Position numbers and translations under genes: made by a program. From contig CBFFRP010000271.1 of the NCBI GenBank assembly GCA_965644295.1, forward strand, positions 65,262-129,261: a stretch of DNA of 64,000 nucleotides, written 5' to 3'. The notes under the pieces were generated by a model. The model did no database searches. It saw only the letters and a program-made list of their open reading frames with translations, and was not told the DNA's origin. Every line of letters begins with the position of its first letter. Position 1 is the first letter of the stretch. Positions 35,281 to 64,000 of the stretch are shown here, piece by piece. The DNA is from Paraphysomonas bandaiensis (Eukaryota; Protista; Chrysophyceae).

Positions 35281-38200
35281 ATGACTAGTATTGGAGGGGA
35301 TTGGGTGTCAAATATTGACCCAAGCAGCGGGTGTCCTTATTATACAAATACTGTGACGGGAGAGACCTCATGGGACTACCCAACTGAACTAGGTGGTAAT
35401 GTCTCTCAGGGAGGGCAATGGATTGAAACATATGATGAGTCATCTGGATCATATTATTATCTTAATGATGTAACGGGAGAATCGACATGGGAGAAGCCGG
35501 AGAATTATGTACCAGCTAGCGGCGCTGGTGTGGATAATGCTGAGGCAGAGGAAAATCCCGCTAATTGGACATCTGGTGTAGATAATGGCAACACATGGTA
35601 TTATAATAATATAACGGGAACCACTCTGTGGGAGCGACCTGCTTGTCTTGGCCCTGTGGAAGCCACTGAGCCTCCTGCCCCAGTGGCTGAAGTCGAGGAA
35701 CCCGCTGAGGTCACTCCTGTCCCTGCTGTGAAGAGAGCGTCGGTATTGCCTCCGCCCGCCATAAAATCAAGCTCAGCAACAACATCTTCCACGGCGGCCA
35801 CAACTGAAGATAGGCCAAAATCTATCAAGCGCGCATCATTTCAACCACCTCCTGTTCTCCCTAAGGCTGCCACGGAGAAGACCCCTATTGTTCTTCCTAC
35901 AGTGAATGTGCAGCAACGGCAGGCTGAGCTTGCAGCTATCCCGGAAGAATCCTCTTTGCGATCATCCATAGGGATAAGTGAAAATGAAGCTTCAGCGATA
36001 GGTAGTGTTAGTGATATGAAGAGCAAGCTGGGCGCTGTGCCAATGCGCATGCCAGGACAGCCGGTACCCCCTGGTGATGGTACAGGTGTGTAATATATTA
36101 ATATTCTTGAAACTGGAATTAACACAGTTGGTGCTAATTTCATGTATTAAAGTAAATTGTTATATATTTGATACACCTATTATTGAAAAAGTCTAATGAT
36201 ATGTGATATAATAATTTAGACACTCCTGTCAATGCAGCAGATACTCCTCCCCCTCCGCCAGCTCCCCCTGTAGCGGATCCTGCACCATCTGTCAGTTCAT
36301 CAGGAACTGCTCCCCCCCCTGTCGATCCCCCAAAGCCCACCTCCAGGAAGAGTAAACAGCAGTCCTTCGCTGCACTACGTGCCCTTGAGAGTGTTGACGA
36401 AGAGAGTGAGACTACTACAACCGGTACTATATTTTTTTTTGCTGATGGATTGATTCAGTTCTTTGTCATGAATGTTTTGCGCAGGTGGTGATGCAAGTAT
36501 GATCGAAAAACCATCGATGGCTGTTGCCAATGAGTATGTTACGAATAGCAGTGTGACTTCAGTTCTTACAGAACGTAGCATTCATCGTCTTATATCTAAA
36601 GACGATAAGACCACTGAGGAATTGATTGCTCAGGTAAGAATAGAATATGCAAGTTGGTGTTACTATAGAATACCCCAAGGGCGTTTGTCGTCACAATGTG
36701 TATATATGAATGACTTGCTTGTAGGTTGCTGGTTTAACGCTCGAGCAGTATGGCGAAAAGTTTTTCAATTTTGACCGAAAAGGAGTCTTCAAGAGTCGCA
36801 CCACAATCGACAAGCTCCTTAGCTGGAAGAGCGAACTCATAAAGACCTCCCTACGAGTCCTTTCCTCGGAGATGGTCACTGGTAAACAGATTATATCTTG
36901 CATATGTTAATTTCATGCTATAAACATGATTCTTATATGTGTGCGTATAGAGGCCGTGCAACTCTTTAGGAACGTTACGGGGTATATGGGAGATCGAAAC
37001 AGGTATACATATATGATGTGGAGAGCACATTCCGTAGTGCATACCTTATATATGGTTTTAATCAGTGTATCTGTATATTTGTAGCGCTAAAGCTCCCACT
37101 GACCACGCCTTTAAAATCTTGAACCACATGATGCTCGCCCCAGAGGAGCTCCGAGATGAGCTCTTCTGTCAGCTGTGCAAGCAAACGAACAACAACCCCG
37201 ACCCAGTGTCCTGTGAGAAAGGATGGCAACTGATGATGATATGTCTGGCTATTTTCCCCCCAAGTTCAGACTTGATGCCCCATCTGATGGCGTATTGTGC
37301 TTCAAAATTGCACAGCGATGTTCCCAATGTGGGTAACTTTGCAGAGATATGCTTACACAGGTGACTGCACTGTATACCTGTGAATCACGTTGCAACCCTG
37401 ACCATTTTTCCTGCTTCCAGAATTCCAAAGATATGCCGCCTTGGGCCTCGACGTGAACTACCGACTAAAATTGAATTGGAGGCCATGAAGCGTGGTGGAA
37501 CAGTGTGTGTCCGAGTATTTTTTCTGGACGATAAATACTGTATCCTCCGAGCTGATTCGTGGACTACCGCACGAGAGACGGAAGACACTCTCGCGAAGAT
37601 ATTGAACATAGCCAACGATAAACCGTTCTCATTGTTTGAGGTTAGCACTGGAGAGGAAGAGAGAGTCCTTGACCCTGATGAAAGAATTCTTGATTTGGTG
37701 TCATTTTGGCAAAGAACCGAACTAGAGGATATCGCGAAAGTCGGAAAAAGTGAGGCGTTGTTCTGCGGCCGTGTAATATGCTAACCCGTACCATTGCTTT
37801 CAGGTGCTACTATTGAGGAATTCAAGTTCCAATATAAGGTGGGCTTATTTTATGACGTGGAGGATAGTGATACTTCAGCCATTGAGCTAATGTATGTACA
37901 AGCCACACATGATGTCGTGGATTCACGCTACCCCTGCTCTGAGCAAGATGCCATTACCCTGGCGGCGCTGCAAATGCAGGAAGCATTCGGGGACTTCCCC
38001 TCGAGTGGGGAGTGTTCTTTCTTAAAAGGGAAGTTGGGTCTGTACCTCTCATCGCGTCTAATTGAGCAGTTCCCTGCCGCAGAACTTGAGGAGAAGGTAT
38101 ACAAGCTATACAAGAAATTAACTGGGTACTCTCAGATGGAGGCTAGACTCAGTTACCTAGATTACGTAAAGAGCTGGAAGATATACGGTTCGACGTACTT

Positions 38201-41399: not shown

Positions 41400-44261
41400 T
41401 TATACAAACATATTTCTCAAGTCATTTTTCCATTTGTATCTCAACTTATTTTTGTCAAAATGTCCGGGTTTGATTGCACAAGACTGATATTGTTCAGTTC
41501 CAAATTTATCGGCATTGAACTCTAGCCAGGATTGTATCTGTGCCCATGGAATCATACCATTTGGCTTTTGATACTCCTTTATCAAGGCGAGAAGCGATTT
41601 TACTTCGTCATCTGACCATTCTTCATGCCCACGTAAAACCTTCTTGCTCGTGCTTCGAGAATACATTGGACTGCTCGTATTGCTAGAAATTTCTTTTGTT
41701 GGAGTACACATAGGACTCACAGACACCGCACTATATTCTTCTAGATTTCTTGCGAATATATTACACTCGTCATCACCATCATCTTTTACACAAAGGGAAC
41801 CCAATTTTCCGATGACATCCTCCATACTCTCACGTAACTGCGAGTCATACGGAACATTTTCCTTGTTGTAGAAATAAGCCTTATCAATATTGAGACCATC
41901 TCGATCAAATGCTACTCCACTTGAGACATCTATGTCATTGGATTCCGATTTACATATTAGACTGGTCTGAGAACAGCATCTATCTTTAGATCTACCGGAG
42001 ACGCTATAATTCAAATTTCTGTCTACTGATGATTCGGGCGAATTTACAATGGAATCAACAGCTACGAGTTCTGTTTCGTCAGAGCTGTCGTTGAAGAAAT
42101 CGTGCAAATCCAAAAAGCAAAACGTTGTCGTTGAATCGGAGTTAATTTCATCACAACTCTGAGCAGTGAATAGTCTTGGGCCACAGTGAATCCCCTGTGT
42201 TGATGGAATACTTTCGGTGTTATATTCACAGGGAGGAGTTATATCGCTTTCCATTTCACTATGACAGATATCTTTTTGATTTTCGGCAGGTGAAGAGTCA
42301 GCAGCCTAAGTCAGTGGTTAGCCAAGATTGGTATGATACGACAACACACACCTCTACATATTGCTCTGAATGTGGAGAGTACAGTCGAGAGCTATGACAC
42401 GGAGACAAGTCGACATTGTCCGTTGGATACAAGTCCTATATTAAATGAGAATATCATTCAATATATCTTGAAAGTTACCTTTTCAGCGCTACCACATTCT
42501 GCATCATTAGAACAAACTTTCGCATTCATAGTCATTTTTTGCGCACTTGAGTCTATATTATTAAGTGATTTAATATTGCCAGGTTGCGTTTCAACTGTTG
42601 TTTCGTCATTTTTACTGCTGTGATCATGAGAAAACACTGCTGATGAGGGCACACAATATTCACCACTGTGTTCTGCATTATATCCACTGGAGCACGAAAC
42701 ATTATCCGTATCGTCTTCCTCATCAATAGAATACTCTCGTTTATTAATCATCTCTGTGGCTTCGCACGCTTGTATCTCATTGGGTCCATTATCGGTTTTG
42801 CTGATTGACCTATGTTCACTATTCAGCAACACCGTATCATCAACATCCTCGATATGACTGTTATCAATAACACCGATGGCGACGTCATCTACAAGGCTGA
42901 CATATCTGTCATTGGCGCCGCGTTGATATGACCCCTTTCCCTCTGCTGCCAATGATTTATTCGAATCGGCAGCAACATAAGTATTTAACTTCTGTAATAG
43001 AGTTGTCGCGTAAGGCTCCATGGCTTGGCATATTCGATCAATATCCCACAGTTCAATGTGGACATTTTGACCTAAAAGCTTATCAGCGGTTTCTTTGGCG
43101 TTGCGCGTGTAGGTGCTTGTGGTCATGAAGAACCCCGAGTGGGATTCCGCATGCCACATTGCCCCTAAGAACTCACGAATCATCACCGCCGACACCTTGC
43201 AATTGTATCTTTTGCACTGACCAACAGCTTTCCATGTTGAGTTATGAACACGACTTCTAAGTATAAAATCTATTCCATTGTCAGCCGCCTTCCCACATTG
43301 TGTTGTTTTATACCCCAAGCAATCAAATAAATCGCAGCAAAATGCTTCAAATGCTCTACCATCACGAGGAAGATTTAAAAGCTTATGTCGTAATATTCCC
43401 ACATGATCAGATTCATTAAATTTATCCAGAATATTTTCGCTTACGACAACATCGAAACCACAAGAAGTATCAATCTCTGTTTCAACTGAACGCACCTGTT
43501 GTCCGATTGTTACAAGGGAAGCTGAAGGTATTTTGTATGAATCAGGTTCTATAGAACAAGAAATACTCTCCACTTGTGAAGAGATATTTGCTACACATTC
43601 TCGAGACTGTATCAGCTGACGAGATAAAATAGTGTTCTCATCTCGCAAGCTCTTGATATTTGATTTCAGTCGGGACACATGCTCTGTTTGCCGCGAACTT
43701 GTTTCTGTGATACTGAGTTGAATTTCACGCATTGTTTCGTCTCTACCTTTTAATTCCAATTGTAATTCATCGATCAACATGTTTAGTCGATGGTTTTCAT
43801 TCTGAGCACTGTTCTTTTCTTCTGTCACGAGTATCAATCGACGTTCCAAATCAGCTATCTTAGACTCAAGCATTCGTACCGGAGTATTGATTCTCTCCTT
43901 TTCTAGTTCTTGGTTCCGTTTACCAAGTCTGCTGAGATATTCCATGTTGTTTGCGGTAGCATCAGTAAAAGTTTTTTGCATTGCACTCAAATTGTCATCT
44001 TTTGCCATTAACTCTTGTCTCAGTTGAATACAACACTCCAACAATCGAGCATTTTCTTTTACAGTAGCTTCATTTTCATTTCGTAGAGCTCGACAAATAT
44101 TTCCTAATTGAGACAATTTATCTTCACAAGCCATCTTTGATTTTATGGCATCGTTGTATGCAATTTCATATGATTCTAAAGCCTTCCACAGAGTAGAGTA
44201 TTCCATGCCCTTTTCGTGCATCAAGGGTAAGTCATTCACTTGAGAATACAAACTTTCCAGC
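41400..44261 (-). CDS. Coiled-coil + Mrr-type restriction endonuclease + C-terminal Myb/SANT protein (spliced; first exon(s) unresolved)
   Basis: ORF 42458-44251 has FEAF...LGY...DNGIDF...QCKRY...IREFLGA...GFFMTTSTYT..AK. Introns 42478-42436 and 42351-42306 join it in frame to ORF 41400-42254 (WSDDEVKSLL...PWAQI...LRYKWKN). Confidence 0.8.
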
Positions 44262-45559: not shown

Positions 45560-46199
45560 ATATACACATATTAATATGCTTATTGTTAGAATAAATAAAT
45601 GAATATATTAGTTATTTAATTCAAAATTAAGTTTATATGCATTAAATTAGCTGCACGATTATATGTGCGTGCATGTTGTTGGTTGTAGACAGTTATTATT
45701 GCTATGTCAAAGATATAACATTTTACAAAATGTGTAGTTTTGTAATGTCTAACTTCAATAATAATTTTGCAAACTTAGATAAAGTTGGAAACATTTAGGA
45801 ACATATAATAATACTTATGATCAATATCACTTCTCAGTCGCCAAATTTATGTTGTCTCAGCTACCAATCATTTCCATACAATCTAGATATCACGATCTTA
45901 TACGGACAATATATTTCAGTTTCACTACTATGATTGCTACTGTGACAATAGTTCTCATCATACAGTTAACCACTTCTGTATTCCTCCATTAACAGTCATA
46001 AGTCAAATATCTTTGAACTATAGCTTTCAATTGCTTTCAAATAGCAGAACTCAACAATTTATCGACAAGACTAAAGTTGCTAAAACTCACTCATATTCAG
46101 TTAATATTACATTTTTGTATGATAATTACATACACTCAGCTTACAAATACAAACACTGACAAATTAACTGCCCCATTCTGCGAGTGTGTGTATAATTAC

Positions 46200-46525
46200 T
46201 CCTACAGAGATTCAACGCACCATCTAATAACTTCTGTTTCGTCATTGGGCTCGGATCAGCCTGTCAAGAAACACAGCTAAAGTCACTCTGCTCTCAAAGT
46301 GGGTCTATGTACCTGCCCGCTAGAGAAACAGGTGCCCTGCATATGATCATGCCTCTCATCGCCCTGCAGGTGGTTCAGGGAGTCTCCATTGATGTCGGGC
46401 AAATCAGCCGCGCAGGAGGTGCTCAGGCGGCGTATGCCCGTGTCCGTGAGACTGTAGGACTGAGGCAGAACCCGGTGGACTTTCTGTTCCTACTGGATGC
46501 TTCTGGATCTATGCGCTCGAAGTGA
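46200..46525 (+). pseudogene. 5'-truncated first copy of the permuted-vWA gene
   Basis: Homology begins mid-CDS (CCTACAGAGATTCAACG) and is followed by a ~0.3 kb spacer deletion near 46612. Confidence 0.85.
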
Positions 46526-47937
46526 GACATCGAACCCAACCATTACCGCCATTTTTGATACTACGATATTGTGATCTTATTATTGTACAGAATTATATAT
46601 TTATTTGACAATTCGTTACATTCACCCTTCGTGAGTGGATACGTGGATACCATCCCCATTCAGCCACTATGCTAACAAGATCCCGGACTGCATAACTTAT
46701 CTTGCTACGAGGTTTCATACACTCAAAGAAGAAAAGCTATATAGCATTGCTTGCTTCTTTTATACTATTCTGTTTTATTAGTGTGTGTACATTTCACGAT
46801 ATTCTACGGATAATCAATATAGTTGGCATTCCCAACATTAAAGAGGGAAATGGATATGGCATATGGCAGAGCTACATAATGCATACACAAACAGATTATG
46901 ACACAACAATGTATAAGAAACACTGATATAATTCAAACCGTGTAGGATATTAAATGGAATAAACTGTCAATTCCACAATAACATAACATAATATAACCTA
47001 CCACAGTTGTTGAATGACTAATATGGCATTCATCAGAATCTACACGCAATTAGTCCATTTGCTTTTGTATGACTAAGTATAAACATATTAAAGTTGAAGT
47101 GCATATATAATCATATGTAATACCACTCGCGTAAGCGATGGGTTGTCAAGCTAACCAAGACTCCTCCATACACAACAACTCCTGTTTCTCCTCTTGTATG
47201 TACTCAACCGCTCAGCGACACACGAATCACAAGAGTTCTAATCGCAAGTCGATATTTAATTTACAATGGTAGAGGTTTCAGAGTCAACACGAGGAGTGAG
47301 GGTACTCAGCTGGCTTGTTGTAAGCACTGCATATGCAGTCGCCGTTGTTCTTCGTCCATAAACAAACTCAATAACATGTCATCCTTCGAGATTGAATTCC
47401 ACACAACACACTATCACCAATATTAGCTCACCCTGAAGCTAATTTAAGAATGGTGTGTGGCCTTATGGGCATATTCAATGCACTTCACTGAGGCTCCGAC
47501 AGATATCACTGATATGAAAATTTCACTGAAAAAGTCTCGGATTCTGCTGTGAAAATATAAGCCCAACCTGACCAAGAGACACGAGGTCATAACCAACAAA
47601 TATAATGTGCAAAATACTTACTTTGCTTCCAGCGACATTCACTGCTGCTGATAAGTGTGCTGTGATCTGTGTCGGAACTATCTCTCAAACAGCACACAGT
47701 CTGTGCAGTAGCCGTACCAGAACTCTATACACAGCAGTCTATACCTACAGCCTACAGCGCAGTGTGGGCCAACGGAATACTGCTGTGTACAATGTATACT
47801 ACGGTCGTACAGCCGGCAGATTCTCGCCATGAAGATATTTTTTTGAAGAATATGCGGACATTTCTGATTTTGTCTGCAAATCCAAATCATCCGTCCATTC
47901 CATACATAACTCTTCTCCACAAACACAACTCAAAGCA

Positions 47938-48708
47938 ATGGGAAACTCTTCATCATCAACTACATGTGGCAATACTACGCCAGCCAGAAAAACTCCCGCA
48001 ACTACTACTGTGACAGGAACCACTGGGATAACTGCCCTAGGCGTGGCATCTGATTCACGAATTGCCGTGGCAGCTCAAAGTATGGCTCAGTTCCTCCATT
48101 CAACGATGACTAGAATAGACCGCTGTACTGTGGTGGGGTTTCATACTCAATACAAGCCTCTTGTCTCCCTGCAATCGGAGGATATGGCATTGATGGGCCT
48201 TGCTGCATGCTGCAGAATGACCAACGACAAAGAGAGCGGTGGTACTCATCTTTGGGACTCTATTGTGGTCTCAGTCTTGCAACACATCACTACTGCAGAC
48301 CGATCACGACCGTGGGTGCTGGTGATTTTAACTGACGGTGGTGACAACGGCAGCAAGCAGACTTTGAAAGATGCCGCCCAGATCCTACAGAGATTCAACG
48401 CACCATCTAATAACTTCTGTTTCGTCATTGGGCTCGGATCAGCCTGTCAAGAAACACAGCTAAAGTCACTCTGCTCTCAAAGTGGGTCTATGTACCTGCC
48501 CGCTCGAGATGCAGGTGCCCTGCATATGATCATGCCTCTCATCGCCCTGCAGGTGGTTCAGGGAGTCTCCATTGATGTCGGGCAAATCAGCCGCGCAGGA
48601 GGTGCTCAGGCGGCGTATGCCCGTGTCCGTGAGACTGTGGGACTGAGACAGAACCCGGTGGACTTTCTGTTCCTACTGGATGCTTCTGGATCTATGCGCT
48701 CGAAGTGA
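47938..48708 (+). CDS. Circularly permuted vWA protein, array copy A
   Basis: Intact 256-aa ORF with C-terminal VDFLFLLDASGSMRSK. Confidence 0.88.
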   Translation: MGNSSSSTTCGNTTPARKTPATTTVTGTTGITALGVASDSRIAVAAQSMAQFLHSTMTRIDRCTVVGFHTQYKPLVSLQSEDMALMGLAACCRMTNDKESGGTHLWDSIVVSVLQHITTADRSRPWVLVILTDGGDNGSKQTLKDAAQILQRFNAPSNNFCFVIGLGSACQETQLKSLCSQSGSMYLPARDAGALHMIMPLIALQVVQGVSIDVGQISRAGGAQAAYARVRETVGLRQNPVDFLFLLDASGSMRSK

Positions 48709-49125
48709 GACATCGAACCCAACCATTACCGCCTTTTTGGATACTACGATATTGTGATCTTATTATTGTACAGAATTATATATTTATTTGACAAATCGAT
48801 CTAAACACAGACAATTATCTCTGTGTTGCATATGGCTGAATTCTGAATTACAAGAATATTTTAATATCATTCACCATTTACCATGTATGCCAAGTAAACT
48901 CAATTATTAATTAATTAATTTTTTTTCATTTCATGTAGCGATATATTTCTGTTCATACATTCTATGGTATATAGTACATAGATGAAACATATGGATGGAT
49001 ATAGCACTAGCACAATATACTACAATAAAGCATTACATAGTAGAAATAAGTATTTACTGGGTTATCACGCTCCAAGGAACATTACATTCACCCTTCGTGA
49101 GTGGAGACGTGGATACCATCCCCAT

Positions 49126-49418
49126 TGTTGGGAAATGCTCATTTTACTTAGATCAAAGAGAGATTAAGTTGTTAGACTAGATAGATTTATTAATATCGTT
49201 TACACAAATTGTGTTAAACAACACAAGCTCGTTTTGTGCCATGCATAAATCACTACTTCTGTAGACCTTTCGCTACTAAACATATCTTGAAAGAGCAAAC
49301 TATTTCAGTTTTCTCAATATCATAACAGCATCTACACATCACCATACTTCACTGTATTCTCGTACATTGTCTTCAAGTACCACATTGAATATACTAGGAT
49401 ACAGTCCATATTCTAATA
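49126..49418 (-). repeat. Copia 3' LTR
   Basis: Direct repeat of 54288-54580, preceded on the minus strand by the PPT. Confidence 0.95.
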
Positions 49419-49591
49419 CTCCCACTCAATGTAGAATGCAGTGATACGAAACAACAATGAGTACAGTGATCTTCATGCTATAAACTAGTCTCATAGGTAA
49501 AATAGATGTGAAATCTTATCAAGATACATATATAACTAGCAGTCAACTAGATATATAGTTATGTGGGATTCTCACCCACTAAAACACACCT

Positions 49592-52500
49592 TTAACCTCT
49601 TCGGGGTCGCTTCTTCTGCTGCTCCTCAACTCTGGTTGACACACTTCTCTTAACCCCGGTAATAGTTTTCTCATGACGACTGAAAAGTTTCGTTGACAAT
49701 GCCTTCGTGAAAATATCAGCCGCCATATCATCCGTCGACACATGAATCAACTTTGCCGTAGGAAATTTTCCATTTACATGCTCTCTCACCCAGTGATACT
49801 TGATGTCTATATGCTTCGACCTCTTATGATACACAGGATTCTCGGAGAGATCTTTCGCACTCTTGCTATCCATAAAGAATGGAGTCGGCTTCGCAACTAA
49901 GAGCCCGAGCTCCTTGAACACCCCCCGAAGCCACACCAGTTCTTGCATAGCCGCATACTCCGCCATATATTCAGATTCCATGCTCGAAGTTGCAACTGTG
50001 GTCTGTAGTTTAGACTGCCAGGCCAATGCGCCTGCACATAAGAACACAATGTATCCTGTTGTCGATCGCCGAGTCAGTCTATCACCAGCCCAATCTGAAT
50101 CACTGAACACATGTAAGTCGAACTCACTCCCACTGAATCTGATGCCCTCATCAATTGTTCCACGCAAATATTTCAATAAGTGAATCGCCAGTTTGCACGA
50201 TGCATATGTCGGACAACTACTAAATCGAGACAATAACCCCACTGCATAAGCCAGATCAGGTCTAGTATGCATTGCTAGATACAACACTGCTCCAATAATT
50301 TGCCGATACGGAAATGAGTCAACCCACTGCTTCTGCTCCTCCGTAAGTTCACGTTCCTCTGCCAACAGATCCTGAACATTAGTAGGTAGTGGGGCCTCCT
50401 TATTCTTACTACTCTTTCCCATAACTGAGCTGAATTTCTTGATAATATTCTTAGCATACTCAGATTGATCTAACATATACCAATTTTCTCCTCTGGTTAT
50501 CCTGATGTTCAGAAATCGCTTACACACTCCCAGATCATGCATCTCGAATGTTTCACAGAACCTACGCTTTACGCTTTCCAAGTAAGTCAGATCAGCGGAT
50601 GCAATTATGATATCATCAACATATATCAATAATAAATGCAGTTTTCCGTTACTCCATCGCATATACAAACACGTATCCAAAATACACGGAGTAAAATGCA
50701 ATGATTTAATAAACTTGTCAATATGTTTATTCCACTGTCGCGGTGAAGATCGCAGTCCATACAATGCCTTGATTAGTTGAAAACACCATCCAGCTAGTAA
50801 TTCCTCATCTGGTGGAGGTGCCATATACACGTCATCCTCCAGATCTGCATAGCAAAATGCGGATGATACATCTAATTGATGCACATGCATCTGTAACATA
50901 AACGCAATCGCTAACACTAGTCTAATGGTTATACCCTTAACCACTGGAGCGAAAGTGGACGGCTCCTCCTCCTTCTTCTCTTGGAGATTTCCTAATGCCA
51001 CTAGCCGAGCCTTGTACTTTACTATATTCCCTAGTATGTCTCGCTTCACCGTATGCACATATTTCGCTCTAACTAATTTCACTCCGCTTGGAATTTTCAC
51101 GATCTTCAAGACACGTCTTTTCAGCAATGATGTCTTCTCCACCATTCGAGCTTTTCTCCATTGTTGATACTGTGGAGATCTCTCTGCCTCGGCATATGAA
51201 TTTGGTATCTTGATATCTTCTGTCTCTGCATGGTTAAGATCAATATTATGCGCATCCGGTACTTCAACCATATTAATCTCTCCTAAAACTGACGCGTTTG
51301 CCAGTCTCCGCTGCAGCCGTTTGCGTCGGACCCGACCATCACCATCTAGTTCAATCGGTCGACGAGGTATATAAGAACCCGTACCTTGCTCATCCTGAGC
51401 ACGCACATCGTGCGTTGTGGGAGGAGCCCCGCTCACAACCCCAGACTCATAGTCTTCAGAGGTCTGCAACCTCACAGCTGTCTCCTGACAGGTTGGGTCA
51501 GGACTCTCCTGTAACCCTCCAGGTCTTCCCTGGTCCAGCACCCTGGCTGGCATAGTACTCAGGGCGTCCCCCTTTCCTATATATCCGGTATTCCCGGGAG
51601 TTTCTGCAGTCATTCGCACTACGTCCTCGACGTGAATCGGCACCCGGTGCTCGATATGCTTCCGACCTGCAGTTACCAGAGATCGATAGGCTACTATTAC
51701 CCCCTTTCGTTCTACTACTCTCGTGGTCTTGTAGAGAAGACCATCCTCATCATCAATATGATATGTACCTTCTAAGCCCGCATAGTCAGACACAATTTTC
51801 GGTCTCTCGGCCTCCTTCACTCGAAGAGCATCTATCTCAGCGAAATAGCTCTCCGAGCGTGACGGTATGGACTCATCAGTTAATACATGTACCGACGTGA
51901 CGACCCTATCAGTCGCAGGTAGATATACATCATATCCTACCTTTTCATCTGAATATCCTATCAGATATCCGATAAGGGCCTTGTCGTCCCAGTCTTTCCG
52001 TCGATCCGCCTTTGTAGTGAGGACATACGCACGACACCCCCATACTCTGAGATATTTCAGGTTGGGAGCCTCACCAGTCAAAAATTCAAGAGGGGACATA
52101 TACCCCTTCGCTGTCTTTGTAGGCAATCGAATTAATATGTACCTGGCTGCCATGTAGGCATCTAGCCAAAACTGTGAAGGCAATCCTGACTGAATCAGCA
52201 TCGCTAATGTCATCTCACCACAGGTCCTGAATTTCCGCTCCTCAATCGCGTTCATCTCAGGAGAGTCCGTAGAGCTCCACGTATGTTGATAGCAACCCTG
52301 TGACCTAAGATATTGTCGCAGCTCATCACATATTAGCTCCCCTGCTCCATCTGCATGGTAATGATGCATTTCTAATTTGTACCTTTTCACATCTCCTTCA
52401 AAAATCTTCTTGAAAACCTGCAGTACCGATGACCCAGTCCTATGAACAAGCCCTTCCGACCAGAACATCCGACTGGCATGGTGTGTTAGTTTGAGCACAT

Positions 52501-54304
52501 ATATTTCCCCTCCTCGAGCTGGACAATTTAAGTATACTGCTATATCGGCCGAGAAATTTGGACGAACGGAGTCCTCATCCTTTGTCCGAAAACTTACTCT
52601 GGTGATCTTCGCCCTGGCGCATACATCACATAGACACTGTTCTTTGGAAACACGTTTCGAGAGATGTTTTCGTTTCAGTCCAGTCCCAATAATTAGCATT
52701 CTTTTGTGGGCTTCTACCAACGCATGCTTGTTAAAATGACCCGCTCTCCTATGTAACAGCTCCAGTTCATCCTCACCCGTACGGTCACTGAGATTTACTT
52801 CTGAATCACTGGATGTCGATACGTCTGGAAGCTCCAATAACTGCTGTGTTGGCACAGCAGTCATTCCATTCTTCATAGGTCCCTCCAACACCAGCTCATC
52901 CGTATTTCTGTCATATATCTGTATACCATACCATACAGTAAATCGATATCCCATATCGTTCAACTTCCGTCCAGAACAAAGACACCGATTTATCTGACTT
53001 GATACCTCAATGTTCTTCCATGCTCCACGGGAACCTACACTCGTGACGCATATCTCTGACCCTTTTTTCGAACCATTAATAACCTTTGATGTGTGCATAT
53101 GACTATCAAGTATATTCACATCATTTATCAAAAACATTGATGACGAACAACAGGTATCAATGTATGTATAGTGAATATCCTCATGCACACTACTGCATAT
53201 ATTCGTCTCATACACATTACATGACAAGTGATACTCTTCCTGTTGCTCGATCATATTTGCTTCGTCTTCGTCAGACAAATCCGCTGGCTCTCCACGCCTG
53301 ATGTTTTCAACTGTAAGTAGTCTTTTGTCTGGTTTCCTTCCATCTTGAAACCTCACAGCCTTGCTCTTGCTTTGCGAGTACTTCTTTTTCGATGCTGGAC
53401 AATCGATGGCAAGATGTTCCTTTGACTTACAATTTCTGCACCCAGTATATTCGGCACTTCCAGGTCGCTGCCCTGTAATCTCTGTATCCTTCTTCATCGG
53501 CTTCTTCTTACCGTTGTTCTTCTTACGATGATCCCTCTCTCTGCGATATCGTTTCTTACTGTCTATCAGGTTCAGCTCCTCCACTCTTTTACGCTTCTTC
53601 TCCAACGCTTCCTTCCCAGCCATAGTATCATCATAGCCTTCTATCTTACGTGATACAGTTACATAATTAACATCATCATCCATCAAGTATAATCCAACTC
53701 TCAGTTGAGCATACTCTTCATTGAGCAAGCCTTCTCGTAGTCGACTTGTTTTTGATACCTCCGAGATATCCTGCTGCTGCTCCTGTAGTTCCTTCAGCAG
53801 TAGTTCGAACCGTAGTACGTAGTCCTTCGCCGTCTCCTCCGGACGCATACGGAAAGAACCATATTGAGTTAAGAGGTCACTGATCCTATTTTGCTTCCCT
53901 CCAGCAAAACACTTCTTCAACTCATCAATCATTACATGTGTTTTGAACCTGTTTACACCACTCCCTTCTGCCTTGAACGCTTTGTGGGTAAGATGGAATT
54001 TACGCAGCGCTTTCGGGGAATGCTGCACCGCATCCCTGCAGTAAGAATAAGCTATGGCGTTCGCCTTCCAATACCTCTTCACAGCCTGTCTGTACGCCTT
54101 CTCCTCCATCAACGTAAGTGGCTGCTCCCCGAAGTCGCTCTCCTTAGGTGGCAGTTCCACCGCTACCTCGCTTTGTTCCTTCCTCATAAGGAATGTCTCG
54201 AAGTCCTCAATCCATTGTTCAACGTTAGTCTCGTTGAACTGAGGAACTACTCCTCTATCCTCCTTCTCTCCTCCTCGCTCGCTACCATGTTGGGAAATGC
54301 TCAT
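49592..54304 (-). CDS. Copia Gag-Pol polyprotein (Gag, Zn knuckle, PR, IN, RT, RNase H)
   Basis: CRNC...H...C knuckle; YIDTCCS protease; H...H...CDVC and D/D/E integrase; KARLVALG, QLDV, KALYGL and YVDD RT; DSDWAGD and ADIFTK RNase H. Order is IN before RT. Confidence 0.97.
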   Translation of the reverse strand: MSISQHGSERGGEKEDRGVVPQFNETNVEQWIEDFETFLMRKEQSEVAVELPPKESDFGEQPLTLMEEKAYRQAVKRYWKANAIAYSYCRDAVQHSPKALRKFHLTHKAFKAEGSGVNRFKTHVMIDELKKCFAGGKQNRISDLLTQYGSFRMRPEETAKDYVLRFELLLKELQEQQQDISEVSKTSRLREGLLNEEYAQLRVGLYLMDDDVNYVTVSRKIEGYDDTMAGKEALEKKRKRVEELNLIDSKKRYRRERDHRKKNNGKKKPMKKDTEITGQRPGSAEYTGCRNCKSKEHLAIDCPASKKKYSQSKSKAVRFQDGRKPDKRLLTVENIRRGEPADLSDEDEANMIEQQEEYHLSCNVYETNICSSVHEDIHYTYIDTCCSSSMFLINDVNILDSHMHTSKVINGSKKGSEICVTSVGSRGAWKNIEVSSQINRCLCSGRKLNDMGYRFTVWYGIQIYDRNTDELVLEGPMKNGMTAVPTQQLLELPDVSTSSDSEVNLSDRTGEDELELLHRRAGHFNKHALVEAHKRMLIIGTGLKRKHLSKRVSKEQCLCDVCARAKITRVSFRTKDEDSVRPNFSADIAVYLNCPARGGEIYVLKLTHHASRMFWSEGLVHRTGSSVLQVFKKIFEGDVKRYKLEMHHYHADGAGELICDELRQYLRSQGCYQHTWSSTDSPEMNAIEERKFRTCGEMTLAMLIQSGLPSQFWLDAYMAARYILIRLPTKTAKGYMSPLEFLTGEAPNLKYLRVWGCRAYVLTTKADRRKDWDDKALIGYLIGYSDEKVGYDVYLPATDRVVTSVHVLTDESIPSRSESYFAEIDALRVKEAERPKIVSDYAGLEGTYHIDDEDGLLYKTTRVVERKGVIVAYRSLVTAGRKHIEHRVPIHVEDVVRMTAETPGNTGYIGKGDALSTMPARVLDQGRPGGLQESPDPTCQETAVRLQTSEDYESGVVSGAPPTTHDVRAQDEQGTGSYIPRRPIELDGDGRVRRKRLQRRLANASVLGEINMVEVPDAHNIDLNHAETEDIKIPNSYAEAERSPQYQQWRKARMVEKTSLLKRRVLKIVKIPSGVKLVRAKYVHTVKRDILGNIVKYKARLVALGNLQEKKEEEPSTFAPVVKGITIRLVLAIAFMLQMHVHQLDVSSAFCYADLEDDVYMAPPPDEELLAGWCFQLIKALYGLRSSPRQWNKHIDKFIKSLHFTPCILDTCLYMRWSNGKLHLLLIYVDDIIIASADLTYLESVKRRFCETFEMHDLGVCKRFLNIRITRGENWYMLDQSEYAKNIIKKFSSVMGKSSKNKEAPLPTNVQDLLAEERELTEEQKQWVDSFPYRQIIGAVLYLAMHTRPDLAYAVGLLSRFSSCPTYASCKLAIHLLKYLRGTIDEGIRFSGSEFDLHVFSDSDWAGDRLTRRSTTGYIVFLCAGALAWQSKLQTTVATSSMESEYMAEYAAMQELVWLRGVFKELGLLVAKPTPFFMDSKSAKDLSENPVYHKRSKHIDIKYHWVREHVNGKFPTAKLIHVSTDDMAADIFTKALSTKLFSRHEKTITGVKRSVSTRVEEQQKKRPRRG
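54277..54287 (-). promoter_or_regulatory. Primer binding site, probably initiator tRNA-Met
   Basis: TGGTAGCGAGC follows the LTR directly. It is complementary to a tRNA 3' end GCUCGCU-A-CCA, whose U72 implies the A1:U72 pair typical of eukaryotic tRNAiMet. Confidence 0.75.
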
Positions 54305-54580
54305 TTTACTTAGATCAAAGAGAGATTAAGTTGTTAGACTAGATAGATTTATTAATATCGTTTACACAAATTGTGTTAAACAACACAAGCTCGTTTTGTG
54401 CCATGCATAAATCACTACTTCTGTAGACCTTTCGCTACTAAACATATCTTGAAAGAGCAAACTATTTCAGTTTTCTCAATATCATAACAGCATCTACACA
54501 TCACCATACTTCACTGTATTCTCGTACATTGTCTTCAAGTACCACATTGAATATACTAGGATACAGTCCATATTCTAATA
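54288..54580 (-). repeat. Copia 5' LTR
   Basis: TATTAGAA...TTCCCAACA on the minus strand, followed by the PBS. Confidence 0.95.
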
Positions 54581-55863
54581 CCCATTCAGCCACTATGCTA
54601 ACCAGATCCCGGACTGCATAACTTATCTTGCTATGAGGTTTCATACACTCAAAGAAGAAAAGCTATATAGCATTGCTTGCTTCTTTTATACTATTCTGTT
54701 TTATTAGTGTGTGTACATTTCACGATATTCTACGGATAATCAATATAGTTGGCATTCCCAACATTAAAGAGGGAAATGGATATGGCATATGGCAGAGCTA
54801 CATAATGCATACACAAACAGATTATGACACAACAATGTATAAGAAACACTGATATAATTCAAACCGTGTAGGATATTAAATGGAATAAACTGTCAATTCC
54901 ACAATAACATAACATAATATAACCTACCACAGTTGTTGAATGACTAATATGGCATTCATCAGAATCTACACGCAATTAGTCCATTTGCTTTTGTATGACT
55001 AAGTATAAACATATTAAAGTTGAAGTGCATATATAATCATATGTAATTCCACTCGCGTAAGCGATGGGTTGTCAAGCTAACCAAGACTCCTCCATACACA
55101 ACAACTCCTGTTTCTCCTCTTGTATGTACTCAACCGCTCAGCGACACACGAATCACAAGAGTTCTAATCGCAAGTCGATATTTAATTTACAATGGTAGAG
55201 GTTTCAGAGTCAACACGAGGAGTGAGGGTACTCAGCTGGCTTGTTGTAAGCACTGCATATGCAGTCGCCGTTGTTCTTCGTCCATAAACAAACTCAATAA
55301 CATGTCATCCTTCGAGATTGAATTCCACACAACACACTATCACCAATATTAGCTCACCCTGAAGCTACTTTAAGAATGGTGTATGGCCTTATGGGCATAT
55401 TCAATGCACTTCACTGAGGCTCCGACAGATATCACTGATATGAAAATTTCACTGAAAAAGTCTCGGATTCTGCTGTGAAAATATAAGCCCAACCTGACCA
55501 AGAGACACGAGGTCATAACCAACAAATATAATGTGCAAAATACTTACTTTGCTTCCAGCGACATTCACTGCTGCTGATAAGTGTGCTGTGATCTGTGTCG
55601 GAACTATCTCTCAAACAGCACACAGTCTGTGCAGCAGCCGTACCAGAACTCTATACACAGCAGTCTATACCTACAGCCTACAGCGCAGTGTGGGCCAACG
55701 GAATACTGCTGTGTACAATGTATACTACGGTCGTACAGCCGGCAGATTCTCGCCATGAAGATATTTTTTTGAAGAATATGCGGACATTTCTGATTTTGTC
55801 TGCAAATCCAAATCATCCGTCCATTCCATACATAACTCTTCTCCACAAACACAACTCAAAGCA

Positions 55864-56634
55864 ATGGGAAACTCTTCATCATCAACTACATGTGGCAATA
55901 CTACGCCAGCCAGAAAAACTCCCGCAACTACTACTGTGACAGGAACCACTGGGATAACTGCCCTAGGCGTGGCATCTGATTCACGAATTGCCGTGGCAGC
56001 TCAAAGTATGGCTCAGTTCCTCCATTCAACGATGACTAGAATAGACCGCTGTACTGTGGTGGGGTTTCATACTCAATACAAGCCTCTTGTCTCCCTGCAA
56101 TCGGAGGATATGGCATTGATGGGCCTTGCTGCATGCTGCAGAATGACCAACGACAAAGAGAGCGGTGGTACTCATCTTTGGGACTCTATTGTGGTCTCAG
56201 TCTTGCAACACATCACTACTGCAGACCGATCACGACCGTGGGTGCTGGTGATTTTAACTGACGGTGGTGACAACGGCAGCAAGCAGACTTTGAAAGATGC
56301 CGCCCAGATCCTACAGAGATTCAACGCACCATCTAATAACTTCTGTTTCGTCATTGGGCTCGGATCAGCCTGTCAAGAAACACAGCTAAAGTCACTCTGC
56401 TCTCAAAGTGGGTCTATGTACCTGCCCGCTCGAGATGCAGGTGCCCTGCATATGATCATGCCTCTCATCGCCCTGCAGGTGGTTCAGGGAGTCTCCATTG
56501 ATGTCGGGCAAATCAGCCGCGCAGGAGGTGCTCAGGCGGCGTATGCCCGTGTCCGTGAGACTGTGGGACTGAGACAGAACCCGGTGGACTTTCTGTTCCT
56601 ACTGGATGCTTCTGGATCTATGCGCTCGAAGTGA
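55864..56634 (+). CDS. Circularly permuted vWA protein, array copy B
   Basis: Intact 256-aa ORF, protein identical to copy A. Confidence 0.88.
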   Translation: MGNSSSSTTCGNTTPARKTPATTTVTGTTGITALGVASDSRIAVAAQSMAQFLHSTMTRIDRCTVVGFHTQYKPLVSLQSEDMALMGLAACCRMTNDKESGGTHLWDSIVVSVLQHITTADRSRPWVLVILTDGGDNGSKQTLKDAAQILQRFNAPSNNFCFVIGLGSACQETQLKSLCSQSGSMYLPARDAGALHMIMPLIALQVVQGVSIDVGQISRAGGAQAAYARVRETVGLRQNPVDFLFLLDASGSMRSK

Positions 56635-58332
56635 GACATCGAACCCAACCATTACCGCCTTTTTGGATACTACGATATTGTGATCTTATTATTGTACAGA
56701 ATTATATATTTATTTGACAAATCGATCTAAACACAGACAATTATCTCTGTGTTGCATATGGCTGAATTCTGAATTACAAGAATATTTTAATATCATTCAC
56801 CATTTACCATGTATGCCAAGTAAACTCAATTATTAATTAATTAATTTTTTTTCATTTCATGTAGCGATATATTTCTGTTCATACATTCTATGGTATATAG
56901 TACATAGATGAAACATATGGATGGATATAGCACTAGCACAATATACTACAATAAAGCATTACATAGTAGAAATAAGTATTTACTGGGTTATCACACTCCG
57001 AGGAACGTTACATTCACCCTTCGTGAGTGGAGACGTGGATACCATCCCCATTCAGCCACTATGCTAACCAGATCCCGGACTGCATAACTTACCTTGCTAT
57101 GAGGTTTCATACACTCAAAGAAGAAAAGCTATATAGCATTGCTTGCTTCTTTTATACTATTCTGTTTTATTAGTGTGTGTACATTTCACGATATTCTACG
57201 GATAATCAATATAGTTGGCATTCCCAACATTAAAGAGGGAAATGGATATGGCATATGGCAGAGCTACATAATGCATACACAAACAGATTATGACACAACA
57301 ATGTATAAGAAACACTGATATAATTCAAACCGTGTAGGATATTAAATGGAATAAACTGTCAATTCCACAATAACATAACATAATATAACCTACCACAGTT
57401 GTTGAATGACTAATATGGCATTCATCAGAATCTACACGCAATTAGTCCATTTGCTTTTGTATGACTAAGTATAAACATATTAAAGTTGAAGTGCATATAT
57501 AATCATATGTAATTCCACTCGCGTAAGCGATGGGTTGTCAAGCTAACCAAGACTCCTCCATACACAACAACTCCTGTTTCTCCTCTTGTATGTACTCAAC
57601 CGCTCAGCGACACACGAATCACAAGAGTTCTAATCGCAAGTCGATATTTAATTTACAATGGTAGAGGTTTCAGAGTCAACACGAGGAGTGAGGGTACTCA
57701 GCTGGCTTGTTGTAAGCACTGCATATGCAGTCGCCGTTGTTCTTCGTCCATAAACAAACTCAATAACATGTCATCCTTCGAGATTGAATTCCACACAACA
57801 CACTATCACCAATATTAGCTCACCCTGAAGCTACTTTAAGAATGGTGTATGGCCTTATGGGCATATTCAATGCACTTCACTGAGGCTCCGACAGATATCA
57901 CTGATATGAAAATTTCACTGAAAAAGTCTCGGATTCTGCTGTGAAAATATAAGCCCAACCTGACCAAGAGACACGAGGTCATAACCAACAAATATAATGT
58001 GCAAAATACTTACTTTGCTTCCAGCGACATTCACTGCTGCTGATAAGTGTGCTGTGATCTGTGTCGGAACTATCTCTCAAACAGCACACAGTCTGTGCAG
58101 CAGTAGCCGTACCAGAACTCTATACACAGCAGTCTATACCTACAGCCTACAGCGCAGTGTGGGCCAACGGAATACTGCTGTGTACAATGTATACTACGGT
58201 CGTACAGCCGGCAGATTCTCGCCATGAAGATATTTTTTTGAAGAATATGCGGACATTTCTGATTTTGTCTGCAAATCCAAATCATCCGTCCATTCCATAC
58301 ATAACTCTTCTCCACAAACACAACTCAAAGCA

Positions 58333-59103
58333 ATGGGAAACTCTTCATCATCAACTACATGTGGCAATACTACGCCAGCCAGAAAAACTCCCGCAACTAC
58401 TACTGTGACAGGAACCACTGGGATAACTGCCCTAGGCGTGGCATCTGATTCACGAATTGCCGTGGCAGCTCAAAGTATGGCTCAGTTCCTCCATTCAACG
58501 ATGACTAGAATAGACCGCTGTACTGTGGTGGGGTTTCATACTCAATACAAGCCTCTTGTCTCCCTGCAATCGGAGGATATGGCATTGATGGGCCTTGCTG
58601 CATGCTGCAGAATGACCAACGACAAAGAGAGCGGTGGTACTCATCTTTGGGACTCTATTGTGGTCTCAGTCTTGCAACACATCACTACTGCAGACCGATC
58701 ACGACCGTGGGTGCTGGTGATTTTAACTGACGGTGGTGACAACGGCAGCAAGCAGACTTTGAAAGATGCCGCCCAGATCCTACAGAGATTCAACGCACCA
58801 TCTAATAACTTCTGTTTCGTCATTGGGCTCGGATCAGCCTGTCAAGAAACACAGCTAAAGTCACTCTGCTCTCAAAGTGGGTCTATGTACCTGCCCGCTC
58901 GAGATGCAGGTGCCCTGCATATGATCATGCCTCTCATCGCCCTGCAGGTGGTTCAGGGAGTCTCCATTGATGTCGGGCAAATCAGCCGCGCAGGAGGTGC
59001 TCAGGCGGCGTATGCCCGTGTCCGTGAGACTGTGGGACTGAGACAGAACCCGGTGGACTTTCTGTTCCTACTGGATGCTTCTGGATCTATGCGCTCGAAG
59101 TGA
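58333..59103 (+). CDS. Circularly permuted vWA protein, array copy C
   Basis: Intact 256-aa ORF, protein identical to copy A. Confidence 0.88.
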   Translation: MGNSSSSTTCGNTTPARKTPATTTVTGTTGITALGVASDSRIAVAAQSMAQFLHSTMTRIDRCTVVGFHTQYKPLVSLQSEDMALMGLAACCRMTNDKESGGTHLWDSIVVSVLQHITTADRSRPWVLVILTDGGDNGSKQTLKDAAQILQRFNAPSNNFCFVIGLGSACQETQLKSLCSQSGSMYLPARDAGALHMIMPLIALQVVQGVSIDVGQISRAGGAQAAYARVRETVGLRQNPVDFLFLLDASGSMRSK

Positions 59104-60795: not shown

Positions 60796-61566
60796 ATGGG
60801 AAACTCTTCATCATCAACTACATGTGGCAATACTACGCCAGCCAGAAAAACTCCCGCAACTACTACTGTGACAGGAACCACTGGGATAACTGCCCTAGGC
60901 GTGGCATCTGATTCACGAATTGCCGTGGCAGCTCAAAGTATGGCTCAGTTCCTCCATTCAACGATGACTAGAATAGACCGCTGTACTGTGGTGGGGTTCC
61001 ATACTCAATACAAGCCTCTTGTCTCCCTGCAATCGGAGGATATGGCATTGATGGGCCTTGCTGCATGCTGCAGAATGACCAACGACAAAGAGAGCGGTGG
61101 TACTCATCTTTGGGACTCTATTGTGGTCTCAGTCTTGCAACACATCACTACTGCAGACCGATCACGACCGTGGGTGCTGGTGATTTTAACTGACGGTGGT
61201 GACAACGGCAGCAAGCAGACTTTGAAAGATGCCGCCCAGATCCTACAGAGATTCAACGCACCATCTAATAACTTCTGTTTCGTCATTGGGCTCGGATCAG
61301 CCTGTCAAGAAACACAGCTAAAGTCACTCTGCTCTCAAAGTGGGTCTATGTACCTGCCCGCTCGAGATGCAGGTGCCCTGCATATGATCATGCCTCTCAT
61401 CGCCCTGCAGGTGGTTCAGGGAGTCTCCATTGATGTCGGGCAAATCAGCCGCGCAGGAGGTGCTCAGGCGGCGTATGCCCGTGTCCGTGAGACTGTGGGA
61501 CTGAGACAGAACCCGGTGGACTTTCTGTTCCTACTGGATGCTTCTGGATCTATGCGCTCGAAGTGA
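60796..61566 (+). CDS. Circularly permuted vWA protein, array copy D
   Basis: Intact from the MGNSSS ATG at 60796. The longer 60688 start in the ORF track comes from a T6 instead of T7 run. Confidence 0.85.
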   Translation: MGNSSSSTTCGNTTPARKTPATTTVTGTTGITALGVASDSRIAVAAQSMAQFLHSTMTRIDRCTVVGFHTQYKPLVSLQSEDMALMGLAACCRMTNDKESGGTHLWDSIVVSVLQHITTADRSRPWVLVILTDGGDNGSKQTLKDAAQILQRFNAPSNNFCFVIGLGSACQETQLKSLCSQSGSMYLPARDAGALHMIMPLIALQVVQGVSIDVGQISRAGGAQAAYARVRETVGLRQNPVDFLFLLDASGSMRSK

Positions 61567-63261: not shown

Positions 63262-64000
63262 ATGGGAAACTCTTCATCATCAGTCAACTACATGTGGCAA
63301 TACTACGCCAGCCAGAAAACTCCCGCAACTACTACTGTGACAGGAACCACTGGGATAACTGCCCTAGGCGTGGCATCTGATTCACGAATTGCCGTGGCAG
63401 CTCAAAGTATGGCTCAGTTCCTCCATTCAACGATGAGACTAGAATAGACCGCTGTACTGTGGTGGGGTTTCACACTCAATACAAGCCTCTTGTCTCCCTG
63501 CAATCGGAGGATATGGCATTGATGGGCTCCTGCCGACATGCTGCAGAATGGACCAACGACAAAGAGAGCGGTGGTACTCATCTTTGGGACTCTATTGTGG
63601 TCTCAGTCTTGCAACACATCACTACTGCAGACCGATCACGACCGTGGGTGCTGGTGATCGGAACTGGCGAAGTGGTGACAACGGCAGCAAGCAGACTTTG
63701 AAAGATGCCGCCCAGATCCTACAGAGATTCAACGCACCATCTAATAACTTCTGTTTCGTCATTGGGCTCGGATCAGCCTGTCAAGAAACACAGCTAAAGT
63801 CACTCTGCTCTCAAAGTGGGTCTATGCACCTGCCTCGCTCGAGATGCAGGTGCCCTGCATATGATCATGCCTCTCATCGCCCTGCAGGTGGTTCAGGGAG
63901 TCTCCATTGATGTCACAAATCAGCCGCGCAGGAGGTGCTCAGGCGGCGTATGCCCGTGTCCGTGAGACTGTGGGACTGAGACAGAACCCGGTGGACTTTC
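63262..64000 (+). CDS. Permuted-vWA array copy E (scattered indels, probably sequencing error; runs off the window)
   Basis: Same sequence with many small indels that start around 62.1 kb and affect spacer and CDS alike. Confidence 0.55.

Follow-up and report, generated by a model that had tools for sequence, protein, structure and literature searches.

A predicted circular permutant of the von Willebrand A domain in a tandem gene array of Paraphysomonas bandaiensis

Chain order and un-permutation of the domain

The stretch analysed here (the window; 64,000 nucleotides of contig CBFFRP010000271.1 of the chrysophyte Paraphysomonas bandaiensis) is eukaryotic DNA of ~35–45% G+C, taken from a 62.5-Mb assembly. 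It carries an open reading frame (ORF) for a 256-residue protein that we describe as a putative circular permutant of the von Willebrand A (vWA) domain, in which the chain starts at helix α1 and strand β1, with the DxSxS motif of the metal ion-dependent adhesion site (MIDAS), comes last. The ORF and its parts, with the evidence for each, are as follows (pLDDT, predicted local distance difference test).

47938–48708, + strand: complete ORF, 256 residues, predicted circularly permuted vWA protein (ORF call, Pfam, RNA contigs, family, AlphaFold2 model)
47938–48051, + strand: residues 1–38, N-myristoylation-type start MGNSSS, Cys10 and a Thr/Pro-rich, predictedly disordered tether (consensus fit, pLDDT 55–58)
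48052–48561, + strand: residues 39–208, vWA body from α1 to the last helix, with β2–β6 (Pfam VWA profile 18–168, VIA-align, pLDDT 93–98)
48244–48246, + strand: candidate MIDAS ligand Thr103 (motif GGT(103)HLWDS)
48334–48336, + strand: candidate MIDAS ligand Asp133 (motif VLVILTD(133)GGDN)
48562–48654, + strand: residues 209–239, family-specific linker from the old C terminus to the old N terminus, with a conserved A-R-V motif (helices 214–219 and 223–234, pLDDT 73–87, conserved columns)
48655–48705, + strand: residues 240–256, putative relocated β1 strand and DxSxS MIDAS loop (strand E242–248, invariant residues, VWA_CoxE profile 53–70, un-permutation)
48679–48681, 48685–48687 and 48691–48693, + strand: D248, S250 and S252, the DxSxS ligands

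Read along the chain, a Thr-rich lead (starting MGNSSSSTTC in the translation of ORF 47938–48708) is followed by α1 (DSRIAVAAQSMAQFL), DRCTVVGF, GGT(103)HLWDS, VLVILTD(133)GGDN, FVIGLG, the last helix and a linker of ~31 residues. Beyond the linker lies PVDFLFLLD(248)AS(250)GS(252)MRSK and then the stop codon, the chain ending three residues past Met253. No hydrophobic signal peptide or leader was found in the 256-residue protein. A preliminary description of this DNA had proposed the ORF, the order of its motifs and a terminal DxSxS, all of which hold, with β1 and DxSxS forming the last 17 residues. It had also claimed five intact MIDAS ligands, and hmmalign does place D248, S250, S252, T103 and D133 on the canonical columns.

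Pfam VWA (PF00092) matches the protein at 30.3 bits (cut-off 23.8, E = 5.7e-7), with residues 47–195 aligned to profile positions 18–168 of 174. VWA_CoxE matches at 27.5 bits (cut-off 26.4), residues 49–147 covering profile positions 76–172, and the last 31 residues alone match positions 53–70 of the same profile (E = 0.08). In the profile, then, the two pieces lie side by side, whereas in the protein they are swapped. A split match of this kind recurs in relatives, for example P0002 (VWA 19–169; VWA_CoxE 48–71 on the last 24 residues). Standard hidden Markov models (HMMs) had been expected to score only a fragment of such a protein; the Pfam VWA match indeed starts at profile position 18 in the query, and at 19 in P0002. 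NCBIfam gave generic vWA matches below threshold only, and a PDB sequence search with the 256-residue protein gave no match at E ≤ 1.

We then scored 54 family members (described below) in four forms against a canonical vWA HMM, built from 47 ordinary domains among the family-search matches. For the query, the body alone scores 82.2 bits as a baseline and the native order 93.9 bits, the main match running in most members from HMM position ~18–20 to near 179. Placing the last ~19 residues before α1 raises the query to 106.8 bits. The gain over the native order is +11.6 ± 3.4 bits and is seen in 54 of 54 members, with coverage of positions 1–179 in one piece. The same residues shuffled and then moved leave the query at 85.0 bits and, across the family, bring no gain over the body alone. 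The rise in score and coverage on un-permuting that the preliminary description predicted is thus found in every member, at a mean of 11.6 bits and with a negative shuffled control.

In the hmmalign alignment of the un-permuted query, K256 abuts D40 with no gap and a two-residue insert only, a junction that places the break in the β1–α1 loop, as had been proposed. Judged by this re-ordering of sequence, the permutation cut in that loop is clean, with nothing duplicated or missing; the moved segment is homologous to the missing β1, and the protein is a true circular permutant.

A family with the same order and its predicted fold

A word-indexed single-sequence search recovered nothing but the protein itself, encoded on a Tara Oceans metagenome scaffold of 2,545 bp that corresponds to one collapsed unit of the array described below. 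When 1.84 billion representatives were searched exhaustively with HMMER, 237 proteins matched at E ≤ 1e-3, 23 of them at E ≤ 1e-30. With a family profile, 83 sequences are colinear through the C-terminal DxSxS. The chain ends at most six residues after DxSxSM in 63 of these 83, most often after 1, 3 or 4 residues, and 1–4 residues after the Met in 61. By sequence comparison, recurrence of the same order in 83 related proteins puts the observed order beyond chance.

Conservation was read from an alignment of 54 sequences sharing 20–46% identity with the query. G134, D248, S252 and M253 are invariant, and F68, T103, D107, T132, D133, D136, S139, G165, G167, D242 and S250 are at least 90% conserved. 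All five MIDAS ligands thus rank with the positions under the strongest constraint, a pattern difficult to account for unless the site is completed by the terminal strand.

The preliminary description suggested looking for homologues of the same order in protists; these were found there (MMETSP), and in fungi, a green alga and archaea. Members come from chytrids (Rhizophlyctis rosea, Nowakowskiella, Cladochytrium and Zopfochytrium), from Glomeromycota (Diversispora and Rhizophagus), from the streptophyte alga Klebsormidium nitens and from an MMETSP protist transcript marked complete. A 216-residue form occurs in Halolamina pelagica and Haloarcula (contigs of 339 and 141 kb), in genes without introns, and in a candidate-phylum bacterial bin. 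Public annotation names family members "hypothetical" or "VWFA domain-containing", and the haloarchaeal protein has no Pfam match at E ≤ 1e-3. Full-text searches of open-access papers found no published description of a permuted vWA domain. The earlier remark that no family with this order has been described therefore stands for open-access full text, the members lying in public databases under the two labels above.

Longer members carry the permuted domain C-terminally, behind seven TRAF-type zinc fingers, a Sina-type finger or an ALK/LTK glycine-rich domain. Other forms have Cys-rich, finger-like repeats that Pfam does not recognize or, in Rhizophagus, a TLDc domain after the permuted vWA. 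(The architectures with named Pfam domains are taken from proteins P0013, P0002, P0006/P0014 and P0037.) Such domain company is suggestive of signalling or stress-response adaptors.

The archaeal form offers a side view of genomic context. In Halolamina pelagica (NZ_LGUC01000002.1) two copies lie in near-identical 10-kb segments near both ends of the 339-kb scaffold (L016, 324265–334912; L017, 1286–11932). They adjoin a 968-residue HEAT-repeat protein and several ORFs without Pfam matches; the HEAT-repeat protein is the only Halolamina neighbour with a Pfam match, and the context gives no functional clue. Two peptide patterns drawn from the 216-residue form, run against 185,579 species representatives, hit Halolamina pelagica only.

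AlphaFold2, run on the family alignment, gives a model with mean pLDDT 87.9 and predicted template modelling score (pTM) 0.83; the ESM Atlas's own model has pTM 0.80. Confidence differs by part: pLDDT is 55–58 for residues 1–38, 93–98 for the body, 73–87 for the linker helices and ~97 for strand E242–248. The C-terminal segment is thus modelled as a seven-residue β-strand at pLDDT ~97, in line with the strand proposed in the preliminary description. VIA-align superimposes the model on the integrin αM I domain with Z 16.0 and a root mean square deviation of 3.0 Å over 167 residues (model 38–214 on chain 146–324). By textbook numbering, in which the DxSxS ligands of αM I are D140, S142 and S144, this match begins two residues after S144. 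Integrin I domains, VWF A1–A3, TFIIH p44 and ArnB score Z 15–16, and all of the top 50 among 48,161 solved representatives are vWA domains. Foldseek finds vWA domains at E 1e-5 to 1e-3 only.

The aligned model range never passes residue 238 (top 50 of the 48,161) or 239 (Foldseek's top 1000), leaving the terminal strand uncovered; no solved structure with permuted connectivity is therefore seen among those compared. The protein shows a significant profile match, a superposable α/β Rossmann-like fold and the ligands DxSxS...T...D of the vWA superfamily. The canonical order, with β1 and DxSxS first, is not what is found, the profile match starting at 18 and β1 lying at residues 242–248. Being vWA by profile, fold and motif but not by order, it is filed here as a permuted vWA variant.

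Transcripts, proposed mechanism and alternatives

RNA evidence comes from Logan assembled contigs compared with window positions 56400–58860, one period of the array (ORF end, spacer, next ORF start). Three RNA libraries from three independent marine studies (X5, X8 and X14) were used, together with a further run, X1. The X5 contig (from a polyA metatranscriptome) is 859 nt long at depth 1143; it starts 22 nt upstream of the ATG and ends 66 nt downstream of the stop. The X14 contig (974 nt) spans 16 nt before the ATG to 186 nt past the stop, and the X8 contig (762 nt) begins inside the ORF (58530), covers its 3′ part and extends 183 nt beyond the stop. Transferred to the studied copy, their ends define two untranslated regions (UTRs).

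47916–47937, + strand: minimal 5′ UTR (contig starts at 58311 in X5 and 58317 in X14, against the ATG at 58333 of the equivalent copy)
48709–48894, + strand: 3′ UTR of at least 66–186 nt, ending at an AT-rich low-complexity run (contig ends)

These three contigs are colinear with the genome, and they contain no splice joints, skipping joints or unlike extensions. The two 5′ ends lie 6 nt apart and neither follows an AG acceptor (the two bases ahead of 58311 are TC), as would fit ragged coverage rather than a splice junction. Contigs from the spacer in the same runs have depths of 0–96, ORF contigs being 12–160× deeper. DNA contamination would cover the repeat evenly, so this 12–160-fold contrast within one unit speaks for a discrete mRNA. 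The gene is intronless and actively transcribed. The preliminary description had named an upstream exon supplying an ordinary β1, or a downstream exon leading into a second vWA domain, as evidence that would overturn it; neither was found in the RNA contigs. Taken with the family and the profile results, we hold it very likely that the protein is a real, expressed and conserved circular permutant.

MGNSSSS fits the N-myristoyltransferase consensus G-{EDRKHPFYW}-x2-[STAGCN]-{P}. An MG start is present in 20 of the 83 family sequences, all 20 of which end right after DxSxSM, and, on our reading of the N termini, the consensus fits 11 of 13 distinct full-length MG starts (a paralogue starting MGACES, on contig C253, is counted among the 13). 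Some forms without an MG start have tails (CCSIL, CCTIL, CGCCCIQ and CCFCCRIT) that resemble prenylation or palmitoylation (CaaX-like) signals. The pattern is suggestive of attachment to the cytosolic side of membranes as a recurring family theme, and for lipid anchoring itself we judge the balance to be tipped modestly in favour.

The following mechanism would account for these observations. The chain would begin at α1 and run through β2–β6 and the last helix; a linker of ~31 residues would then bridge the usual ends of a vWA chain, leaving β1 as the last element. This terminal strand would fold back into the central slot between β2 and β4, where D248, S250 and S252 would meet T103 and D133 to form a normal MIDAS. 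The site may bind, by way of Mg2+ or Mn2+, an acidic group on its partner. Gly2 would be N-myristoylated and Cys10 possibly palmitoylated, so that the disordered tether (36–38 residues) could hold the domain at the cytosolic membrane face, the protein acting as a lipid-anchored, protein-binding adaptor. The adaptor role is a reasonable guess. Because the cut lies in the β1–α1 loop, both new chain ends, and hence the anchors, would emerge at the MIDAS face, opposite to canonical domains. Completion of the MIDAS by the terminal strand in cis is probable. Taken as a whole, a transcribed array gene encoding a true vWA permutant with a cis strand, a MIDAS and a lipid-anchored adaptor role is the best explanation we can offer, and a likely one.

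Canonical vWA and integrin I domains (PF00092; αM I, PDB 1na5/1jlm) have the same α1–α7 fold and the same five MIDAS ligand positions. Here β1 and DxSxS are last rather than first, a linker of ~31 residues is added and both chain ends would lie at the MIDAS face. In tandem vWA–vWA proteins (bacterial P0104, P0170 and P0171; metazoan multi-A-domain matrix proteins) the segment from α1 of one domain to β1 of the next is colinear with the family; P0104, for example, aligns with the family model over positions 45–255, from α1 of domain 1 to β1 of domain 2. Such an arrangement is what a duplication-and-truncation route predicts for the ancestor. The tandem proteins keep an N-terminal β1 and a full second domain, whereas the permuted family has neither: no DxSxS precedes α1, and after DxSxSM the chain stops or becomes an unrelated tail. 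The family would thus derive from a vWA–vWA protein that lost its first β1 and everything after its second; it is an old family, and probably arose by tandem duplication followed by loss of both ends.

Copines (C2–C2–vWA) are a functional analogy only, as intracellular membrane-associated vWA proteins that recruit partners. They attach by Ca2+/phospholipid binding, whereas lipid anchors are predicted here; moreover, the query has no C2 or Copine Pfam match, its N terminus is a predicted disordered tether and its order is permuted. The cpRAS and YlqF/YawG GTPases, natural permutants of Rossmann-like/P-loop domains, represent the same kind of event, with reordered motifs and a scattered phylogeny, in another fold family. 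In cpRAS–VWA proteins it is the GTPase that is permuted, the vWA domain being ordinary (PMC2430557).

Several points count against the proposed mechanism, and all are gathered here. A model without residues 236–256 still reaches pLDDT 85.6 and pTM 0.78; loss of the strand barely lowers confidence, so this test does not discriminate. (The deletion shortens β2 from 62–68 to 63–68 and β4 from 126–132 to 127–132, with no strand residue lost from β3, β5 or β6; the one-residue losses faintly favour a strand between β2 and β4.) Mean-field direct coupling analysis of 74 family sequences (effective number, Meff, 61) is dominated by gap artefacts and gave no usable contacts for the terminal strand. We infer the β1-slot placement and MIDAS geometry rather than reading them from model coordinates. 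Lipidation and metal binding are predicted from motifs only, the distance from Gly2 to Cys10 exceeds that of classic dual-acylation signals and gene context indicates no ligand or pathway. From Logan contigs neither strand nor true ends nor rare isoforms can be read. At 34 nt past the ATG (58367), one X1 contig leaves the ORF for sequence of contig C206 (G000:C206:12406–12435, − strand, locus L018). The junction shares only ATACTAC, a 7-nt microhomology; it is probably a library or assembly chimera or, less probably, a rearranged copy.

Two alternatives concern what the terminal strand does. The permutation could be functional rather than neutral, with a free, MIDAS-bearing strand, its end point held at 1–4 residues after DxSxSM, that detaches to gate the metal site or is exchanged between molecules in strand-swap polymerization. 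In the same reading the lipid anchors would point out of the MIDAS face, and the site would work directly against the membrane or a membrane protein. We give this reading a small but real chance. vWA and integrin I domains switch through their C-terminal helix, and we know of no vWA or integrin I domain with strand-gated regulation.

Donation of the terminal β1 in trans is unlikely. It would yield domain-swapped dimers or head-to-tail filaments, the permutation serving polymerization or a strand-exchange switch. The strand does stand at the very end of the chain, after a linker of lower confidence (pLDDT 73–87), and the end point is tightly conserved (61 of 83, as above); an amplified gene and the high k-mer depth of its ORF contigs might suit a structural protein, and a monomer prediction cannot separate cis from trans. 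However, native vWA termini lie side by side, as established for integrin I domains, which makes 31 residues ample for insertion in cis; the AlphaFold2 and ESM monomer models are confident over the whole chain, and trans donation has no oligomer support. Insertion in cis is the preferred reading.

The vWA/integrin I domain is among the best studied of interaction modules, found in integrins, complement, Rpn10, TFIIH, Sec23/24 and many bacterial systems, and to our knowledge every description of it puts β1 and DxSxS first. A natural, conserved and expressed permutant would mean that a break within the MIDAS loop itself is compatible with the fold. It probably also illustrates how permutation can proceed by duplication and truncation, a route whose intermediate tandem vWA–vWA proteins could resemble. 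Both chain ends at the ligand-binding face would be an unusual geometry. The family as now delineated would comprise putatively lipid-anchored or zinc-finger-linked (TRAF-type, Sina-type, TLDc) intracellular vWA proteins of protists, early-diverging fungi and a streptophyte alga, and it exposes an annotation gap, in that profile searches report such proteins as N-terminally truncated fragments or miss them.

The tandem array and its surroundings

The studied ORF lies in a head-to-tail array, protein-identical copies starting at 47938, 55864, 58333 and 60796. The elements of the array, a related inverted copy and an inserted transposon are listed by position.

28270–29037, − strand: solitary inverted copy, 255 residues, 98% protein identity (self-comparison)
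46199–46525, + strand: partial upstream copy (residues 148/149–256 only), start of the array (self-comparison)
46614–49126, + strand: repeat unit holding the studied ORF, ~2.47 kb (1.7-kb AT-rich spacer and ORF), 98.6–99.6% identical to other units (blastn self-comparison)
49127–54581, − strand: Ty1/copia-type long terminal repeat (LTR) retrotransposon between units 1 and 2, not part of the gene (1570-residue uninterrupted gag-pol ORF)
55864–56634, + strand: array copy 2, ORF nucleotide-identical (self-comparison)
58333–59103, + strand: array copy 3, ORF nucleotide-identical (self-comparison)
60796–61566, + strand: array copy 4, one synonymous difference (codon comparison)
63262–64000, + strand: degenerate, frame-shifted copy reaching the contig end (self-comparison)

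The LTRs of the copia element are 294 bp long and 100% identical (49126–49419 against 54288–54581), and the insertion looks very recent. Copy 4 lacks the upstream in-frame stop, so that its frame is open from 60688 for 36 further codons (292 residues); the protein from the usual ATG is unchanged. The array runs to the end of its contig (C271, 64000), and another contig begins with a fragment of the ORF tail (G000:C276:1254–1352, 94% identity to residues 224–256), from which the true copy number is probably above that assembled. Run X1 holds many variant contigs, 57 at 95–99% and nine at 90–95% identity.

The spacer also yields RNA contigs of its own at lower depth (57156–58029, equivalent to ~46761–47634 in the first unit): 797 nt at depth 96 in X5 and 874 nt at depth 10 in X8. 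It has no convincing ORF, one small ORF at 47138–47272 starting MGC. They may represent a non-coding transcript in its own right, read-through or background DNA.

Selection within the array leaves little to compare. Copies 3 and 4, the only comparable pair (the windows drawn on two other units ran into the copia element or the edge of the array), differ at 1 of 771 ORF sites and 10 of 1690 spacer sites, which is not significant. Against the array ORF, the inverted copy has nine synonymous and four non-synonymous codon differences and lacks one tether codon. These counts bear on whether the gene is a relic without selected function, a truncated remnant of what was once a tandem vWA gene, carried along and transcribed within a repeat. 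The near-identity of the units makes within-array selection unmeasurable, and degenerate and frame-shifted copies do exist. A relic is nonetheless very unlikely: the MIDAS residues are the best conserved columns across relatives at 20–50% identity, the 9:4 ratio points to constraint, and in three RNA libraries the contigs of the ORF stop close to its boundaries and show the depth contrast given above.

Hardly credible is a gene-model artefact in which the ORF is one exon and a donor AA|GTGAGA at the stop joins DASGSMRS to the next unit, making a canonical or multi-domain vWA protein: the GTGAGA hexamer does overlap the stop codon, head-to-tail units could form one long spliced gene and in-phase AG sites occur at 47835 and 47988, but no joint is seen in four runs, mRNA contigs continue past the stop into the 3′ UTR, the one acceptor able to produce a canonical junction (48041) does not share the phase of the GTGAGA donor, and 63 relatives, including the haloarchaeal genes and the complete MMETSP transcript, end at the same place. 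Splicing of β1 to the α1 of the next unit is thus largely refuted by the colinear RNA contigs and the phase analysis.

The paralogue with the MGACES start (G000:C253:116606–117314, − strand; locus L009, ~1435–2242) is 48–57% identical and has the same permuted order, which makes that order older than the recent amplification. Frameshifts or stops interrupt it, and its frame continues for 20 residues beyond DxSxSM.

Elsewhere in the window, Pfam identifies a ThrE-type exporter (10570–11556, − strand), a protein with HTTM and vitamin-K-dependent gamma-carboxylase lumenal domains (17605–19542, + strand), a NUDIX–ankyrin fusion (29337–30326, + strand), a triple-WW protein (35281–36093, + strand) and an Mrr-type restriction endonuclease domain (42458–44251, − strand).

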